Of a stretch of 64,000 bases of DNA, positions 40,460 through 55,377 are shown one piece after another. Source of the DNA: Monocercomonoides exilis PA203 (Eukaryota > Protista > Preaxostyla); contig LSRY02000060.1 in NCBI GenBank assembly GCA_001643675.2, positions 186,001-250,000 on the forward strand, given 5' to 3'. The position numbers and the translations under genes were made by a program. Below the pieces are notes generated by a model. The model did not search any database and was not told where the DNA came from. It saw only the letters and a program-made list of their open reading frames with translations. Position 1 is the stretch's first letter. Each line of letters opens with the position of its first letter.

Positions 40460-43400
40460 ATGGACAAGTTGAGTTGTGCCAGTGGTCTGAACGAGATTAT
40501 AGACGCCATTCCTATTTTCAAATTCAAGGAATTGAAACAGTTATGTGAAACAATTAAAAAGGAGATTATGAAAGATGATTGCTTAACATGGTATCATCTT
40601 TTGCATATTTATAAATTATTATTTTATCTAATCTCGTGTCAATTTTGTGTTTTTAATATTGTTGACTGTTTATTATGTTAAAGCGCGTCAGCCCATCTTG
40701 AACCCATTAAGCTCGCAGTCGGGTCTCCAAACTCGAAGATTGTTGAGAGAGCATTATCTTGCTTGCAAATATGGATTTCTTCTCATTTTATATGCGGAAC
40801 AGCAAGCGAAAGTTCGTTTTCGCCAAACAAAACTGTTTTGGACGAGACATTAGATATCCTCGAAGCTGCAGCGCACAAAGCCAAAACACTAATTCCTTTG
40901 TGTGTGATTCATGTGTGTGATGAATTGTTAATTTTTAAAATAAATTTTATTATTGTCATTGTTATGCGAAAATATTTACAGACTTTGGAAGCCATTTTTC
41001 TTTCTGATAGTTGCACGATAAGAGGAGAAAGAATTCCGTCAACTCTCAACATTTTTTTAGTTGCTCACACAAATTGCATTCAGCCGGAACATCAAGACGA
41101 ATCATTAATTGTTTTTAAAAAATCGGCAAATTCATTTTTTGTCAAATTGAGGAAAGATTACAATGCAAATGGAGCTCCATCAGGCCAGATCCTTGTTCCA
41201 TCCTCTTCTACTGATAGAAAGCGAGCACCACCAGTTCCACCACCGTCATTCACACAGGCGATGAATGACGTTCCTTCAGAACGGCTGGAAGCTCCAGAGC
41301 CTCTTGGCACTTGCACCGAAAGCCCAACAGCTGGTGCACTGCCAGGCAAACAACCAACAAATTCTGAGGTGCTAAAGAATGGGATGAGTGAGATTGAAAA
41401 CAAGCAACAAACGAAAGAGGAAGAAGAGGAAGTAGAAGAAGAAGAAAGCAAAAGAGATGCAGAGCCAGCGTCTTCCTGTGAGAATGACAGTGAGAACAAA
41501 GAACAACACTCAAAGGTTGATGATGATTCCTTGAAACAGACAAGTACTTCTCATTCAGCAGAATCTGCACTCTCTTCAAATAACACTTCTTCTTCTTCTT
41601 CTTCTTCTCTTTCTCCTTCCTCCACTTCACCCTCACCTTCCTTCTCCCCTTCATCATCCTCCTCTCCCTCCCCTTCCTCTTCTGATAGATCTGCTTCCTT
41701 CACAGACAACGAGTCAAGGGAAGGAGACGAAGAAAACTTGAATGATTTCACGGTGATTGTTGAGCACCCAACACCTGCCTCCACTCCTGACCCACCTCCT
41801 TTTTACTCTTCTGCTGCCTTCACTTCACAGTCACTTATGAACCCAAATTCATCATCATCATCATCATCTTCTTCTTCTTCCTCCTCCTCTTCTTCATCTT
41901 CATCTTCCTCCTCCTCCACCTCCTCCCCTCCTCCCCTCTCCTCCGCTGCCCTTCTCCTCTCCTCCTCCACCTCCCCCCCTGTGCTCTCCTCCTTCTCCCC
42001 TTCCTCCACCCCAGTCCCTCCCCTCCTCGACTGCGTCCAGCTGCTCCAAACACTTTGCTCTGTCGCCCGCTCCCATCTCCACGACCTCCAAGCCCTCCTC
42101 TTCCTCTTCTCTTCTCCTCTCCGCGGCGACGAAGTTGATGACGCCTGCGAAACGATGCGGCTCCTCTGCCTCTCTGCCATCCACTCCCTCCTCACCGAGC
42201 ACTTCCTCCTCTTCCGCACGTATCTCGACTTGGCCTTCACTGCCAGATTTCATGTTATTCCTGTTTCACTCACTCATCTGGGGCACAGGGACATCCACAT
42301 CTTCTCCTTCTCTGTCGCCATCGCTGCTCGTCTCTTATTCGTCTTCGGACTCCGCTTCACCCCCGAAATCGCCTCAACATTGGCTGTCTTTCTGCGGATG
42401 CTGGCAGTGAAGGAGCTGAACACGCTCGCCACAGAGAAAGCGGAAATTATGCAGCTGTTGGCTCCTCCCTTTGGGGTTCCGCGTATTGTGGCAAACATTT
42501 TTTGCACTTTTGACTGCGATTTGGAGGAAGAAAACTATTTTGAGAGGATTTTGGTGGCTGTGTGCAGAATTCTGACTTTAACTGCTGCTCCGGTTAATTT
42601 TTCTTCTTCTCTTTCTTCTTCTTCTTCTTCTTCTGCTTCTGCTTCTTCTTCAAATGCAATTAATTCTGTTAATATAAGCGATAACATTGATAGCAATTCA
42701 TCTTCTCAGTTATCATCTTCTTCTTCTCTTTCTCCTTCTCCTCCTTCTGTTTCTTCATCAAACATAACACATCAACAAAATTCTTCTTCTTCATCATCTT
42801 CCTCCTCCTCCTTTTCCTCCTCTTCTTCATCTTCATCTCCCTCCAATAATCTTCTTCAATCACCTCATTACAATCCAAATGATTTCACTTCACAAACATC
42901 AGAAATGCCACAAAATGAACAAAAAACGAATATTTCCATACTCCAAACAGCTGATCAATACACTTCATCTGTTTCTTCTTCTTCTTCTTCCATTTCACAA
43001 CCACAACAATCTTCATTGTCTTCTTCTTCTTCTTCCTCTCTTTCTCTTTCTTCTTCTTCTTCTCCTTCATCATCAATATCAACATCTTCTTCTTCTCTTC
43101 CTCCTTCTCCTTATCCTTCCTCTTCTTCCTCTCTTTCTTCCTCTTCCTCCTCCTCCTCCTCCTCCTCCTCCTCTCCCTCTCTCTATGATAATTCTCCTCT
43201 TCGTCTAACTTCCCTCTCTTTGATCTGCTCAATTGTCAAAGGGATTTCTGAATTCGTCCTCAAATGCGCTTCTCCTTCTGTGAAAGTGGAACATAACAAT
43301 TATAACAATGTTTATTCTCCTCCTCCTCCTCCTCCTTCTTCTTCATCATCATCTTCTTCTTCTACTTCAATAACATCTTCATCTTCATCATGTTCATTAT

Positions 43401-52429: not shown

Positions 52430-55377
52430 CTATCCATCACTGACAGTGTGTACCAGATCCACCACACTCACAACAGTCACAAAGACACTCGCTGGAATCA
52501 TCACACACAACACAACAAGATCAACAGCCTTGCGAAGCTGGCTCATTCCTCCTTTCCAGCAGATCTTGAGGGATTAAACACACACAAAAAGAGGAAAAAG
52601 AAGGAAAGGAAAGGAAATAAATAAATAAATAAATAAATCAAACATTATACGAGAACAAGAATAGAAAATTTGAAAGACAAATAAAAAAAAAACGGAAAGA
52701 AAGTAAAAAACAAACAAATAAATTTCTAATAAATCTTTTCTCTCTTTCTCTTTCTCATTATTTCTATATTTCATTATCATCATATTCATAATTTCTTCCC
52801 TCTCTCCCTCTCCCCCTCTCCTTCCTCCCCTCTTCACACACACACACACACACACACACACACACACACACACACACACACACACACACACACACACACA
52901 CACACACACACACACACACACACCTTCAAATGCAGCAATGGAGGCAGAATAAACGCCAAAAACGACCCAAAAGTTGCCCCCACCAAGCCCACAAAAGACG
53001 GAAAATGCGATTTGAGCGGTGTGACAGAAGGGACAGCCGTGAGGCAGATGATGAAGAACCGGCAAACATACACAACCACCCAGAATTTTCGTGTGTTTCT
53101 TCGCTTCAGCCTTCTCAAAGAGCGTATTTCATCCAGGGCTTCGAAGACAGGGAAGATGAGGAGGTGGAAGGAGACGATGATGGTGGCAATGAGGAAGCAG
53201 GTGACAATCATGCGAAGCACCTGAAGGAGAAAGAGAAAGAAAGAAAGAGAAAGAAAGAAAGAGAGAGAGAGAGAGAGAGAGAGAAAGAAAGAAACGAAGA
53301 TGTTTCAATAAATAAATAAATAAATTGGTAGATTTTGGAAGAAAATAAGAAAAACAATGAATGTTCAAACATTGCAAAAGAGTGAAAAAAAGAATGAAAT
53401 ATTGAAATTAATAGAAAAATGAGCATTTCGAAAACACTTTCTGAAATATTATCTCCTTTCATTCAATACAAAGTTGTTCACTAAATTATTGTGTCTTCAA
53501 AGTTCATTTCTGAAACTCCCTTCCATCTCTTTCTCTTCTTTCTCTTTCTTTTTTTTCTTTTTCTCTTCTTTCTTTTTCTATTCTTTCTCTTTCTCTTCTT
53601 TCTCTTTCTCTTTCTCTTTCTCTTTCTCTTTCTCTTTCTCTTTCTCTTTCTTTCTCTTTCTCTTTTATTCTTTCTTTCTTTCTTTTTCTTTCTTTCTTTC
53701 TTTCTTTTTCATTCTCTCATCACTTTCTCCCTTCCTCCCCCGCAGCCCCACACTTTATATCTGTCTCCAATGCTCTTCGTGATCAGCTCAGGTGTGTTGT
53801 CACACAGCATCCAATAGTTTATGAAGCCAAAGCCAGAATTCATCAGACACACAACAACAAGCACTGCCGAGAGAGCCTTGCCGTAGTGCTGCGGCTTTGC
53901 CATCGACCCGTGGATTGGAAGGACCTGCGGTTGGTTTATTGAAATAAAAGAAGAGAAGAGAAGAGAAGAGAAGAGAAGAGAAGAGAAGAGAGAGAGAGAG
54001 AGAGAGAGAGAGAGAGAGAGAGAGAGAGAGAGAGAGAGAGAGAGAGAGAGAGAGAGAGAAAGAAAGAAAGAAAGAAAGAAAGAAAGAAAGAAAGAGAGAG
54101 AGAGAGAGAGAGAGAGAGAGAGAGAGAGAGAGAGAATGAAAACAAATAATGCAAAAAACATTTAAATATATAAATGTTATTATTACACAATTGAAAAGAA
54201 ATTAATGAATAGGGGAAAAAAAAACCGCATTTATTAAATCAAATATATATATATATATATATATATATTCAAATAACAACACATCCCCAACAATTATCAA
54301 TAACATTCAACATTTCAATGCTCCAGCACAACCAGAAATCCAAACCAGTCCAGCTCCTTCAAAAGCAAACAGAACAATTCCAAAAAACGTCGGAAAGCCC
54401 TTGAAATTCCACGCAACTGGTGTTCCTACTTTCGTTCCGCCTAAAATTACTCCTCTTTGAAAAAAAATAATGTGTTCAAAGAAATATTCAAAATAAGAAT
54501 ATTAAAATTCGTTTATAAATCCGTTTCTTTCAAGAAAATGACAAATTGATTTCATACATCACAAGAAGTATTAATGCAACAAGCAGCGAAATATTTGCAA
54601 AAAACGAAAATAAAGCAGTGACTTTAAGGGATCTGTGCAACGTTTGATGAAATCAAATAATTAATTAAATGAAACATCGCAGTAAACCTTATAAATGACA
54701 TTAAAAAGAACACAACAATCATGATGCAGGCCCAAAACTCTTGACGAATTTGAGGTAGAAGCAATTCAAGATTCTCCGTTATTATAAGCATGTAACTGCA
54801 ACAGCAGCCAATTTGATAGCAAATTAAAGTTATCTGTACCATCCATATACCAATTCTCCCAAAGGCTTCACGACCGCAATCAGCGTACGTTTTAATGAAA
54901 TGAGAGCCTTTAAAATTCTGATAAAACGAAATTGTTGTAATTGTTATTTTCAATAATTATAAAATATCTTTTAACCTTTCAAAAAATAAACGGTTAAATG
55001 AATCAAACTTTAGATGAGACGAGATCCAATAAACAATATCCTGCAATTAACGAAGCAATTGGAAAAGCGATTATTGAGAGAGCCCATCCGCCTTTTAAAA
55101 AGCCAAATGGAAGACCTGTCAAAGTGTAAATAGTTTTTTCAACATATTTCTGAAGAAATGGATAAGAATCAAGCTATGTACCAAGGATGCCAGATCCAAC
55201 AAAGGATTTGAATGTGTTCATCATCACCTCAGGAACATTTGCAAGTTTATCTATTTTGACATCAATAAGCGAACTTAGTGAAGCAGTAGAATGAACTTTT
55301 GCAGCTGTTGAATCAAATTCGATGCCTTTTTGTTGTCTAAGAAGAGATTCTTCTTCGCCTTCATTGGCACTTACCAT
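52430..55377 (-). CDS. Amino-acid transporter (Aa_trans/AAAP, SLC36-like proton-coupled), 8 exons, 439 aa
   Basis: Exons 55182-55377, 55009-55115, 54688-54917, 54558-54632, 54346-54454, 53754-53924, 52924-53220, 52430-52564 (1,320 nt, all GT-AG). Motifs NTFKSFVGSGILGLPFGFLKGGW, TYADCGREAFG, FGIVLFAFEGAGLVLPIHGSMAKPQHY, FVGLVGATFGSFLAFILPPLLHLK. Confidence 0.92.
52835..52923 (+). repeat. (CA)n microsatellite; on the sense strand (GT)n begins exactly at the intron-7 donor
   Basis: Direct reading. Confidence 0.95.
53950..54135 (+). repeat. (GAAGA)n/(GA)n/(GAAA)n microsatellite block, forming the 3' pyrimidine tract of transporter intron 5
   Basis: Direct reading. Confidence 0.95.

Follow-up and report, generated by a model that had tools for sequence, protein, structure and literature searches.

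The sequences flanking microsatellites come to share mutational biases, which in human microsatellites are reported to reach 25–50 bases (PMC509290). Substitution rates are higher near low-complexity regions (PMC3971593), and GAA/TTC and inverted repeats are mutagenic for the genes that flank them (PMC3681665). In skews caused by replication or transcription, G varies with T, whereas in a region around an ArfGEF gene of Monocercomonoides exilis PA203, G varies with A. The window analyzed here is a 64,000-nt stretch of contig LSRY02000060.1 (positions 186,001–250,000, forward strand), and all coordinates below are positions within it.

The ArfGEF gene is present as two open frames (1729 and 1783 aa), compared with 2177 aa for its Blattamonas ortholog, the BIG2-like P0001, with which blocks of the upstream frame are collinear. 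The true start of the gene lies upstream of 40763. The features of the region are as follows.

40763..45784, plus strand: upstream open frame or exon of the BIG-type ArfGEF gene, with HUS and Sec7 domains (ORF list; Pfam Sec7 7e-39, HUS 3.9e-10)
41586..43702, plus strand: part with pyrimidine tracts only, eight poly-Ser (TCT/TCC) tracts and zero purine tracts (tract list, translation, TRF)
44038..44145, plus strand: Lys/Glu-rich purine tract within the Sec7 domain (translation, tract list; Sec7 match at aa 921–1165 of the frame)
44965..45169, plus strand: in-frame insert, a Glu/Lys purine tract, an AT-rich Asn/Thr centre and a Ser pyrimidine tract (tract list)
45371..45620, plus strand: poly-Gly purine run of (GGA)10, then poly-Ser tracts of TCT/TCC, another purine-to-pyrimidine junction (sequence, tract list, TRF)
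45785..46133, plus strand: predicted intron, GTATGT ... CAG, phase 0, 349 nt (frame-compatible donor/acceptor scan)
46134..51134, plus strand: downstream ArfGEF exon with HDS and BIG2_C domains, in which purine and pyrimidine tracts alternate (ORF list, Pfam, tract list)
46273..46617, plus strand: in-frame insert, purine tract, AT-rich centre, pyrimidine tract (tract list)
46611..46997, plus strand: conserved HDS block, silent sites C-rich and then G-rich (Pfam, ortholog alignment)
47025..47372, plus strand: in-frame insert of the same order as 46273..46617 (tract list, ortholog comparison)
48140..48475, plus strand: in-frame insert of the same order (tract list)
48703..48865, plus strand: in-frame purine-to-pyrimidine insert with a centre of merely 8 nt (tract list)
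49134..49350, plus strand: block inside the BIG2_C match, ending in a run of G-clusters (sequence, Pfam BIG2_C)
49331..49622, plus strand: in-frame insert, again purine tract, AT-rich centre, pyrimidine tract (tract list)
49937..50252, plus strand: in-frame insert, likewise (tract list)
50442..50599, plus strand: in-frame purine-to-pyrimidine insert (tract list)
51139..52431, no strand: spacer between two convergent genes (tract list, sequence)
52905..53220 (about), minus strand: exon of an Aa_trans amino-acid transporter, transmembrane (Pfam 3.5e-11)
53221..53753, minus strand: predicted transporter intron, 5' end approximate, boundaries placed by sequence reading and the tract list
53946..54136, minus strand (gene sense): 191-nt (GAGAA)n/(GA)n/(GAAA)n tract on the plus strand (tract list, sequence)

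The preliminary description of this DNA had reported a periodic alternation of pyrimidine-rich and purine-rich sequence across 41560–54140. This oscillation is confirmed at ~44.0–54.1 kb, where the purine fraction per 100 bp cycles between ~0.05 and ~1.00, but does not extend to 41586–43702, which carries pyrimidine tracts only. Autocorrelation of the purine signal (44000–50600) is −0.46 at lag 250–275 and +0.32 at lag 525, and it peaks again at 1075–1250. Power in the 400–700 bp band is 166–276, compared with a median of 10.9 and a maximum of 63 in 151 other 6-kb windows (drawn from the remaining stretch, 180 kb of random genome and one Blattamonas locus), which is 4–25 times the power of those windows; tracts cover 30–36% of the DNA here and 1–3% elsewhere. 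The asymmetry of the sawtooth is modest, its short purine-to-pyrimidine steps being the inserts and its long pyrimidine-to-purine ramps the conserved blocks. The units, previously called self-complementary, are so as repeat motifs but not position by position.

The oscillation reaches silent sites, as had been proposed. With low-complexity codons masked, the purine fraction at fourfold-degenerate sites is 0.25, 0.39, 0.57 and 0.80 in successive quartiles of the pyrimidine-to-purine interval (r = 0.43, p = 2e-12), and masked silent-site autocorrelation is negative at 300–400 nt (z = −4.6) and positive at 550–600 nt (z = +5.1). GC3 skew passes from −0.66 to +0.76 across these intervals, and seven of eight codon families shift towards purine. 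The codon strings originally cited as an example were located at 49134–49199 and 49291–49350, with CTC, CGC and GTC codons first and TTG, CTG, AGG and GTG codons ~90 nt on. In the HDS block (46611..46997), fourfold purine by thirds is 0.19, 0.18 and 0.68, compared with 0.36, 0.45 and 0.19, without a gradient, in the Blattamonas ortholog. The minus-strand Aa_trans exon, part of an unrelated gene, also has the pattern: along the sense strand, its fourfold sites favour C-ending codons at first and G-ending ones later, with purine at 0.11, 0.53 and 0.79 in successive thirds. The masked gradient, its periodicity and this exon uphold the idea of a nucleotide-level force overriding synonymous codon choice. 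The strand symmetry of this force is likewise upheld by the silent-site gradient and by mirror symmetry around the AT-rich centres, where over 300 nt purine falls from 0.99 to 0.41 on the left and pyrimidine from 0.96 to 0.39 on the right. Because reverse complementation leaves the pattern unchanged, the same polarity in a minus-strand gene, which had been emphasized, is automatic, and the suggested test for a flip with gene orientation is incapable of refuting anything.

The reading frame, introns and intergenic spacer are all affected. The ArfGEF intron consists of a (GA)n/(GAAA)n purine tract, an 89% AT centre with stops and a pyrimidine tract (TRF period 4/6 in the GA repeat), and the transporter intron, in the sense direction, of a purine tract, an AT-rich centre and a pyrimidine tract followed by CAG. 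The next transporter intron has, at its 3' end, a giant polypyrimidine tract, which is 53946..54136 read on the minus (sense) strand. The spacer has the layout of the inserts at a larger scale: a (GAAA)n purine tract directly after the ArfGEF stop, ~1 kb of 76% AT and a (CTTT/CT)n pyrimidine tract.

Silent-site bias is tied to the closest tract of either type and fades within ~80–120 nt of it. In the ArfGEF region, silent-site purine is 0.17, 0.27 and 0.42 at 1–40, 41–80 and 81–120 nt past a pyrimidine tract, and 0.91, 0.63, 0.60 and 0.52 ahead of a purine tract. In eight other, paralogous Sec7-family genes it is 0.23 right after pyrimidine tracts and 0.81–0.85 before purine tracts, and isolated tracts there show same-type enrichment on both sides (outer 0.66–0.71, inner 0.58–0.65). 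In 180 kb of random genome, tracts standing alone have a flank bias too, reaching ~150 nt.

The cause put forward had been a process fixed in position, with polarity switches at close intervals, for example phased chromatin, fixed origins, Okazaki junctions or R-loops. Unit spacing is indeed far more regular than random (CV 0.215; P = 2e-5 versus random placement), and is compatible with dense packing of units of at least ~350–400 nt (P = 0.11–0.38 for a 350–400 nt minimum; P = 0.027 for 300 nt). Nothing requires such a process or any of these agents, which may still play a part; the bias is tract-anchored and recurs at tracts in the eight other genes, the spacing is explicable by packing, and G varies with A rather than with T. 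Polarity does not require it either, since the purine-to-pyrimidine order is seen in unexpanded Blattamonas linkers, which are already ordered from charged residues to Ser/Thr/Pro.

The oscillation itself was not found in Blattamonas P0001, where purine ranges over 0.27–0.71 and the gradient is absent from the aligned blocks. Protein inflation accompanies the pattern, as had been claimed: four linkers are each ~45–150 aa longer than in the Musa ortholog, and the insert at 47025..47372 exceeds its 28-aa Blattamonas counterpart by ~110 aa. The insert at 44965..45169 lies in a linker flanked by blocks whose Blattamonas homologs are at aa 1028 and 1173, and the linker homologous to 46273..46617 (aa 1209–1336) is already Glu/Lys/Asp-rich and then Ser-rich. 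Homologous Blattamonas linkers pass from purine-rich to purine-poor in three of three cases (0.62 to 0.36, 0.66 to 0.43 and 0.70 to 0.35). These three, all from a single ortholog, are the basis of the argument for seeding; more distant orthologs were uninformative.

On balance, and with considerable room for doubt, the oscillation is best explained by runaway growth of GA-rich/CT-rich repeats in pre-existing linkers, introns and gene ends, rather than by any positionally fixed ruler. Polypurine·polypyrimidine repeats (GAA/GAG/GGA·TTC/CTC/TCC class) would have expanded massively in the M. exilis lineage after the Blattamonas split, in the unconstrained spacers of a ~13-kb region. Pre-existing sequence would have seeded the order of purine tract, AT-rich centre and pyrimidine tract, namely the charged-to-Ser/Thr/Pro linkers of the ArfGEF and the polypyrimidine tract at intron ends. 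Within ~80–200 nt to either side of a tract, substitutions would be biased towards the composition of that tract, so that silent sites become C-rich where a conserved block begins, after a pyrimidine tract, and G-rich where it ends, before a purine tract. Units in series would thus yield a ramp per block and a sharp step per insert, and the ~0.55 kb period would be the packed size of one unit. The flank bias is probably mutational, arising near unstable repeats by misalignment or error-prone repair; selection favouring a tract-like composition would look no different. Against seeded repeat growth, the reach of 80–200 nt is longer than that reported for human microsatellites, and the model accounts neither for a tract load 10–40 times the usual at this locus nor for the genome-wide ratio of purine-to-pyrimidine to pyrimidine-to-purine junctions (~1.9 to 1).

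Within the frame, selection would let only triplet repeats persist, in hydrophilic frames (poly-Glu/Lys/Gly/Arg and poly-Ser/Pro), while di-, tetra- and pentanucleotide repeats would be free to grow outside it. In-frame periods are nearly all multiples of 3, the exceptions being two weak arrays of ~2–3 copies (periods 20 and 22); in 41586..43702, every period (3–21) is a multiple of 3. Repeats of the introns and spacer are GA, GAAA, CTTT or CA. Pyrimidine tracts in frame are almost always read as Ser, and the AT-rich centres contain no stops in the coding frame but 3 and 21 when read in the remaining frames. Foldback had also been suggested as a cause; for mRNA or DNA it is predictable, but only between low-complexity arms. 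The inserts are probably translated, and RNA runs contain 74–80% of the 31-mers of the stretch, which fits retention of the inserts better than removal.

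The sawtooth extends over a plus-strand gene for a Sec7 ArfGEF of the BIG/GBF type, in which a Pfam search of the two exons, taken separately, finds HUS, Sec7, HDS and BIG2_C in this order. The minus-strand neighbor is the 3' part of an Aa_trans amino-acid transporter gene, and an AT-rich spacer of ~1 kb separates these two convergent genes. The features of the ArfGEF gene are as follows.

40763-45952, plus strand: first open frame of the ArfGEF gene, 1729 aa
45783-51134, plus strand: second open frame of the ArfGEF gene, 1783 aa
45785-46133, plus strand: intron linking the two frames, GTATGT ... 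CAG, phase 0
41586-43702, plus strand: first ~2 kb of the gene's tract region, with eight pyrimidine tracts and no purine tract as partner

Between ~44.0 and ~54.1 kb, 100-bp windows vary in purine fraction from ~0.05 up to 1.0 and back. This purine signal correlates with itself negatively (-0.46) at lag 250-275 and positively (+0.32) at lag 525, and power in the 400-700 bp band is 166-276, compared with a median of 10.9 and a maximum of 63 in 151 other 6-kb windows. These results bear out the oscillation claimed in the preliminary description, but only in part its extent: ~44.0-54.1 kb oscillates, whereas 41586-43702 holds pyrimidine tracts only. Purine and pyrimidine tracts cover 30-36% of the DNA at the locus and 1-3% elsewhere, and the tract load is 10-40 times the usual one. 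The flanking AT-rich DNA is without the pattern, and random genome samples have no power at 0.5 kb; what is said here of the whole genome draws on random pieces totaling 180 kb, on nine paralog loci of 3.5 kb each and on pattern counts. Elsewhere in the window, some power at 400-700 bp (63) is seen only in 18000-21000, a GC-rich stretch (0.43-0.52) where a few blocks of purines and of pyrimidines occur.

An artefact of assembly or polishing, or chance, is hardly credible as the source of the pattern. The assembly is nanopore-based and low-complexity DNA is error-prone (PMC8767320), but both ArfGEF frames stay open through all tracts, 74-80% of the exact 31-mers of 45000-50900 are found in four RNA-seq runs of one independent 2024 study, and the statistics are extreme relative to shuffles and other windows.

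The natural unit of the pattern is the junction, composed of a purine tract, an AT-rich center (61-89% AT) and a pyrimidine tract, and not the pyrimidine-to-purine ramp. Over ten junctions, the purine fraction on the left drops from 0.99 to 0.41 within 300 nt, and the pyrimidine fraction on the right drops from 0.96 to 0.39 as its mirror image; enrichment of G or C is maximal 90-120 nt out from the junctions. Junctions occur in three settings. In the ArfGEF frame they form eight inserts, whose residues change from Glu/Lys/Gly/Arg through Asn-rich sequence to Ser/Pro; they also make up introns (the ArfGEF intron and a transporter intron) and, in enlarged form, the spacer that separates the convergent genes. 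The long intervals from pyrimidine to purine correspond to conserved protein blocks. All three introns read have, in the sense direction, a 5' purine tract, an AT-rich center and a 3' pyrimidine tract, and the inserts have this same layout with no stops in the coding frame, in line with the preliminary description of frame-preserving inserts laid out like an ArfGEF intron.

Dense G-clusters, a candidate G-quadruplex motif, are present on the sense strand at 49305-49345, just ahead of a purine tract. Runs of C-clusters are located in the mirror position past pyrimidine tracts, for example at 46550-46620.

Several features of the sequence suggest that the inserts are coding. Repeat periods identified by TRF inside the frame are 3-36 and nearly all multiples of 3, the exceptions (periods 20 and 22) being weak and of ~2-3 copies, as in coding microsatellites or low-complexity segments that expand by triplet units in frame. 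Repeats of the ArfGEF intron are GA and GAAA (TRF), and the intergenic and transporter-intron tracts are GAAA, CTTT, CA and GAGAA. In the AT-rich insert centers, the coding frame has 0 stops and the other two frames have 3 and 21, whereas the centers of real introns have stops in most frames. Also, the reading frame of the pyrimidine tracts is almost always that of Ser, not Leu or Phe. The non-triplet repeats and stops in all frames that mark a spliceosomal intron or exitron are not found in the inserts.

It is very unlikely that the inserts are introns or former introns, i.e., exitrons or exonized introns with the local intron architecture, and that the blocks are present or former exons. Such an origin would account for the layout shared with the three introns, and frame-keeping GT ... 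CAG pairs are found around one insert or more (46269-46622, 354 nt). The share of 31-mers present in RNA, 0.74-0.80, is lower than the ~0.94 expected if only the known intron were absent, but is well over the ~0.52-0.6 expected if all inserts were spliced out. The triplet repeat units, unlike the GA, GAAA and CTTT of local introns, the stop-free coding frame and the Ser frame of the pyrimidine tracts all count against this origin, as does the ortholog of Blattamonas nauphoetae, which is one exon over aa 127-2177 and intron-free at the insert sites.

The oscillation reaches silent sites. Across the pyrimidine-to-purine intervals, the purine fraction at fourfold sites outside low-complexity codons is 0.25, 0.39, 0.57 and 0.80 (p = 2e-12), and the GC3 skew of non-low-complexity codons changes from -0.66 to +0.76, with 7 of 8 codon families shifting. 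The masked silent sites are autocorrelated negatively at 300-400 nt (z = -4.6) and positively at 550-600 nt (z = +5.1). Thus, when the proposed test for oscillation at masked fourfold sites was run, these sites proved both graded and periodic, and the CTC/CGC and TTG/AGG-type codon strings quoted from conserved ArfGEF segments are indeed present. In the transmembrane exon of the transporter (minus strand, free of low complexity), the sense fourfold purine fraction is 0.11, 0.53 and 0.79. The claim that polarity is the same in the minus-strand gene therefore holds for this exon, but the agreement is automatic because the pattern is its own reverse complement; for the same reason, asking whether polarity flips with gene orientation is uninformative. 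The fourfold compositions of the two sides are mirrored reverse complements (C 51%, T 25%, A 14%, G 11% vs G 57%, A 23%, T 12%, C 8%), and in the flanks it is mostly C and G that trade places, in mirror fashion between the sides. GC skew agrees in sign with AT skew (A minus T): the asymmetry is one of purine vs pyrimidine.

The tracts anchor this silent-site gradient. In non-low-complexity codons, the fourfold purine fraction past a pyrimidine tract is 0.17 at 1-40 nt, 0.27 at 41-80 nt and 0.42 at 81-120 nt, and ahead of a purine tract it is 0.91, 0.63, 0.60 and 0.52. Eight other Sec7-family genes of the same genome have values of 0.23 just past pyrimidine tracts and 0.81-0.85 ahead of purine tracts. 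Around lone tracts in the 180 kb of random genome (all sites), same-type enrichment is seen on both sides to ~150 nt, with no oscillation. As is typical of microsatellite flanks, composition leans to that of the repeat and fades with distance on both sides. Thus, the ramp within each block results from the flank effects of two tracts that meet there and add up.

Nine Sec7-domain loci of the genome (L020-L028) sit in open frames of great length (1362-4406 aa). At most of these loci, pyrimidine-rich DNA lies ahead of the Sec7 domain and purine-rich DNA past it.

Tract-anchored, strand-polar mutagenesis is unlikely to be the main cause of the pattern. In such a process, purine·pyrimidine tracts or hairpin-prone units would be fragile sites or orientation-dependent fork barriers, and the strand with its 3' end toward the site, exposed in single-stranded form, would lose cytosines, making one side G-rich and the other C-rich. 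GC-skew polarity is as expected at every junction (C-poor left, G-poor right), the mirrored fourfold compositions are in agreement, and a weak polar excess is detected 5' of purine tracts and 3' of pyrimidine tracts (0.68 vs 0.58, p = 0.01). In yeast, GAA/TTC and inverted repeats break and induce Pol-zeta-dependent mutations in their flanks (PMC3681665). A strongly polar flank effect, present in the paralogs, was however rejected, as it mostly disappears once tracts near an opposite-type partner are excluded. With this exclusion the polar excess is down to 0.06-0.08 (p = 0.02-0.26), and same-type enrichment is 0.66-0.71 on the outer and 0.58-0.65 on the inner side: both sides carry the tract's own skew, whereas a break-centered model predicts opposite skews. 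In addition, deamination would enrich T on the exposed strand, where T is depleted, and the yeast effect spans kilobases, compared with ~100 nt here.

The favored seed-and-amplify model, in which GA/CT-type repeats grow in existing linkers, introns and gene ends and flank bias follows from the tracts, leaves some features unexplained: a genome-wide junction excess, the high tract load at the locus, the weak polar component and the C/G exchange. Genome-wide, purine-to-pyrimidine junctions number 46103 and reverse junctions 24446 (~1.9:1; 17-nt runs within 120 nt, counts inflated by register), and GAA/TCT counts agree with this excess. Taken together, these features leave room for a tract-anchored polar mutational process, e.g., orientation-dependent fork stalling or breakage at GAA/TTC or hairpin-prone repeats. 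That polypurine·polypyrimidine tracts are active strand-polar mutators, and the units recurrent fork barriers or break sites that rewrite neighboring coding DNA, with purines favored on one strand and pyrimidines on the other, and spread outward, is conceivable but doubtful. If so, the locus would be a self-organizing non-B-DNA domain, its preferred unit being ~0.5 kb, and would both remodel codon choice and lengthen proteins; its signature would be the ~1.9:1 junction excess genome-wide together with the weak polar flank asymmetry.

Selection for nucleic-acid structure is a clearly unlikely explanation. It would require pairing of the purine with the pyrimidine arms, in RNA or in DNA that is single-stranded, so that introns zip their splice sites together, the mRNA becomes a chain of stem-loops and the gradient reflects selection to lengthen stems. 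The uniform layout of the three introns is consistent with this, the arms are symmetric in length and decay, and when the minimum-energy fold is predicted for 46134-50460, 13 out of 15 tracts examined pair mainly with the opposite type, across inserts and blocks. This fold is unspecific, though, since any purine tract can pair with any pyrimidine tract; outside the tracts there is no position-specific complementarity (mean z = -0.24; shuffles keeping local composition); the eight pyrimidine tracts in the first 2 kb are without partners; and isolated tracts also are surrounded by flank bias. The units had been described as self-complementary, which is correct at the level of repeat motifs (arms including tracts give z = +0.7 to +5.7, owing to GAA vs TTC motifs), but does not extend to flanks outside the tracts. 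With that mean z against block shuffles, palindromic duplication and quasi-palindrome correction were rejected. Also rejected was a mobile-element family (MITE- or RPE-like): in an all-against-all comparison of eight centers, every top alignment inspected was a GAA/TCT-type repeat, and there was no shared core.

The closest relative found for the ArfGEF is the BIG2-like protein of Blattamonas (P0001, 2177 aa, 5.8e-45), which also ranks top in an exhaustive representative search, where no self hit turned up, and has ~30% identity, too little for polarizing silent changes. The purine fraction of its gene is only 0.27-0.71, with no silent-site gradient in the aligned blocks, suggesting that the pattern arose in the M. 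exilis lineage. By BLASTP, the conserved blocks are collinear with four orthologs, those of Blattamonas and Musa and two metagenomic BIG proteins. The M. exilis inserts are located in pre-existing linkers, four of which are ~45-150 aa longer than those of Musa; lineage-specific gain in linkers between collinear blocks is characteristic of low-complexity expansion. Three homologous Blattamonas linkers already change from Glu/Lys/Asp to Ser/Thr/Pro, with a drop in purine fraction from 0.62 to 0.36, 0.66 to 0.43 and 0.70 to 0.35; in Musa and the two metagenomic proteins, linker boundaries are too imprecise for use in this comparison. The order of tract types thus seems to have been inherited from linker composition and then amplified, and the view that a positional process set this order is not sustained. 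A ~700-nt purine-rich stretch (purine >= 0.8) is present in the contig of the Blattamonas ortholog (JARBJD010000039.1, L029:19700-20400), in a minus-strand gene with a PHM7_cyt domain, indicating that Blattamonas also has long tracts, though not in its ArfGEF ortholog.

The intervals between twelve junction centers are 365-785 nt, with a mean of 550 and a CV of 0.215. The proposed comparison of this spacing with random placement gives P = 2e-5, in line with the regularity described. Dense packing with a minimum of 350-400 nt is compatible with the data (P = 0.11-0.38), and a minimum of 300 nt marginally so (P = 0.027); a ruler is not needed for the ~0.55-kb spacing. The idea that a physical ruler with ~0.5-kb spacing, such as phased nucleosome arrays, fixed replication initiation, Okazaki junctions or R-loop zones, imposes alternating strand asymmetry is quite improbable. 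The regularity itself would suit a ruler, as would the continuation of the pattern through intron, intergenic spacer and second gene and its regional confinement between AT-rich flanks. Besides the match to packing, the points against it are that skew tracks tract distance with no fixed phase, that random genome samples lack 0.5-kb power, that the order of tract types is ancestral at the protein level, and that G goes with A, whereas it goes with T in known replication or transcription skews. Skew of the latter type (N-domain-like or R-loop) was rejected as a candidate on this last point, as it requires G>C with T>A on one strand.

The sawtooth is a new and extreme form of a known phenomenon, of interest because its amplitude is large, its two sides mirror each other and conserved domains are affected. 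Microsatellite flanks evolve convergently over 25-50 bases (Vowles & Amos 2004, PMC509290), and substitution is raised near low-complexity regions (Lenz, Haerty & Golding 2014, PMC3971593). Like these cases, repeat-adjacent sequence in M. exilis, coding flanks included, would drift by shared mutational biases, with an effect that fades with distance. Unlike them, its reach is ~80-200 nt, its fourfold amplitude is extreme (purine 0.17 vs 0.91), and tracts of opposite strand type alternate, so that flank effects join as a periodic ramp across conserved domains. Yeast GAA/TTC and inverted repeats, which raise mutation in flanking genes on both sides via single-stranded intermediates and error-prone synthesis (Saini et al. 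2013, PMC3681665), share the repeat class and inverted-repeat geometry, but theirs is an experimental rate effect over kilobases in reporters, and no evolutionary compositional footprint is described there. In M. exilis the footprint extends over a short range, and both flanks mainly take on the tract's own type.

Forsdyke and co-workers are said to attribute low-complexity inserts, e.g., in Plasmodium falciparum, to nucleic-acid-level pressure, purine loading and Chargaff's cluster rule. The ArfGEF resembles this view in that low-complexity segments follow base-composition pressure rather than protein function and purine or pyrimidine clusters lie on one strand; unlike purine loading, where mRNA is purine-rich throughout, clusters alternate within one mRNA and are reverse-complement symmetric. 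Rickettsia palindromic elements, reportedly described by Ogata et al. in 2000, are said to be inserted in frame into genes. They likewise are hairpin-capable DNA tolerated as in-frame protein inserts, but are copies of a mobile family, whereas the M. exilis inserts have only GAA/TCT-type repeats and no common core. Skew sawtooths of replication and transcription, namely human N-domains, bacterial GC skew and promoter R-loop GC skew (reviewed in PMC10030826), share strand asymmetry with sign switches, which was the analogy originally drawn. They differ from M. exilis in scale (kilobases-megabases vs 0.55 kb) and in pairing G with T rather than A, and the M. exilis steps lie at repeat tracts inside a single transcription unit. 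In the Monocercomonoides literature, searched in full text for skew and for introns with polypyrimidine, no description of the pattern was found.

The locus is an unusually clear natural case in which repeat dynamics at the DNA level override synonymous codon choice within conserved domains and have lengthened an essential trafficking protein by an estimated 1000 residues or more. Should the bias in the flanks be mutational, M. exilis would offer a readable evolutionary footprint of repeat-induced mutagenesis, known so far chiefly from reporters in yeast and from loci of human disease. Near tracts, models of codon usage and selection (dN/dS, GC3) will be misled in this genome. As inserts and introns share a layout, gene predictors may mix them up and take in-frame inserts as introns.

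At both convergent genes, a (GAAA)n/(GA)n-type purine tract stands directly past the stop codon on the gene's own sense strand (51139-51259 and 52317-52431), which may be a common 3'-UTR feature in the M. exilis genome. In the transporter, a (CA)n stretch of ~44 copies (52838-52925) directly follows a CT-rich tract and, where the transporter ORF (52834-53220) ends, reads through in the minus-strand frame as (Val-Cys)n; it is probably intronic. A short (TA)n microsatellite is located at 54238-54268, in the AT-rich part of the transporter intron region.
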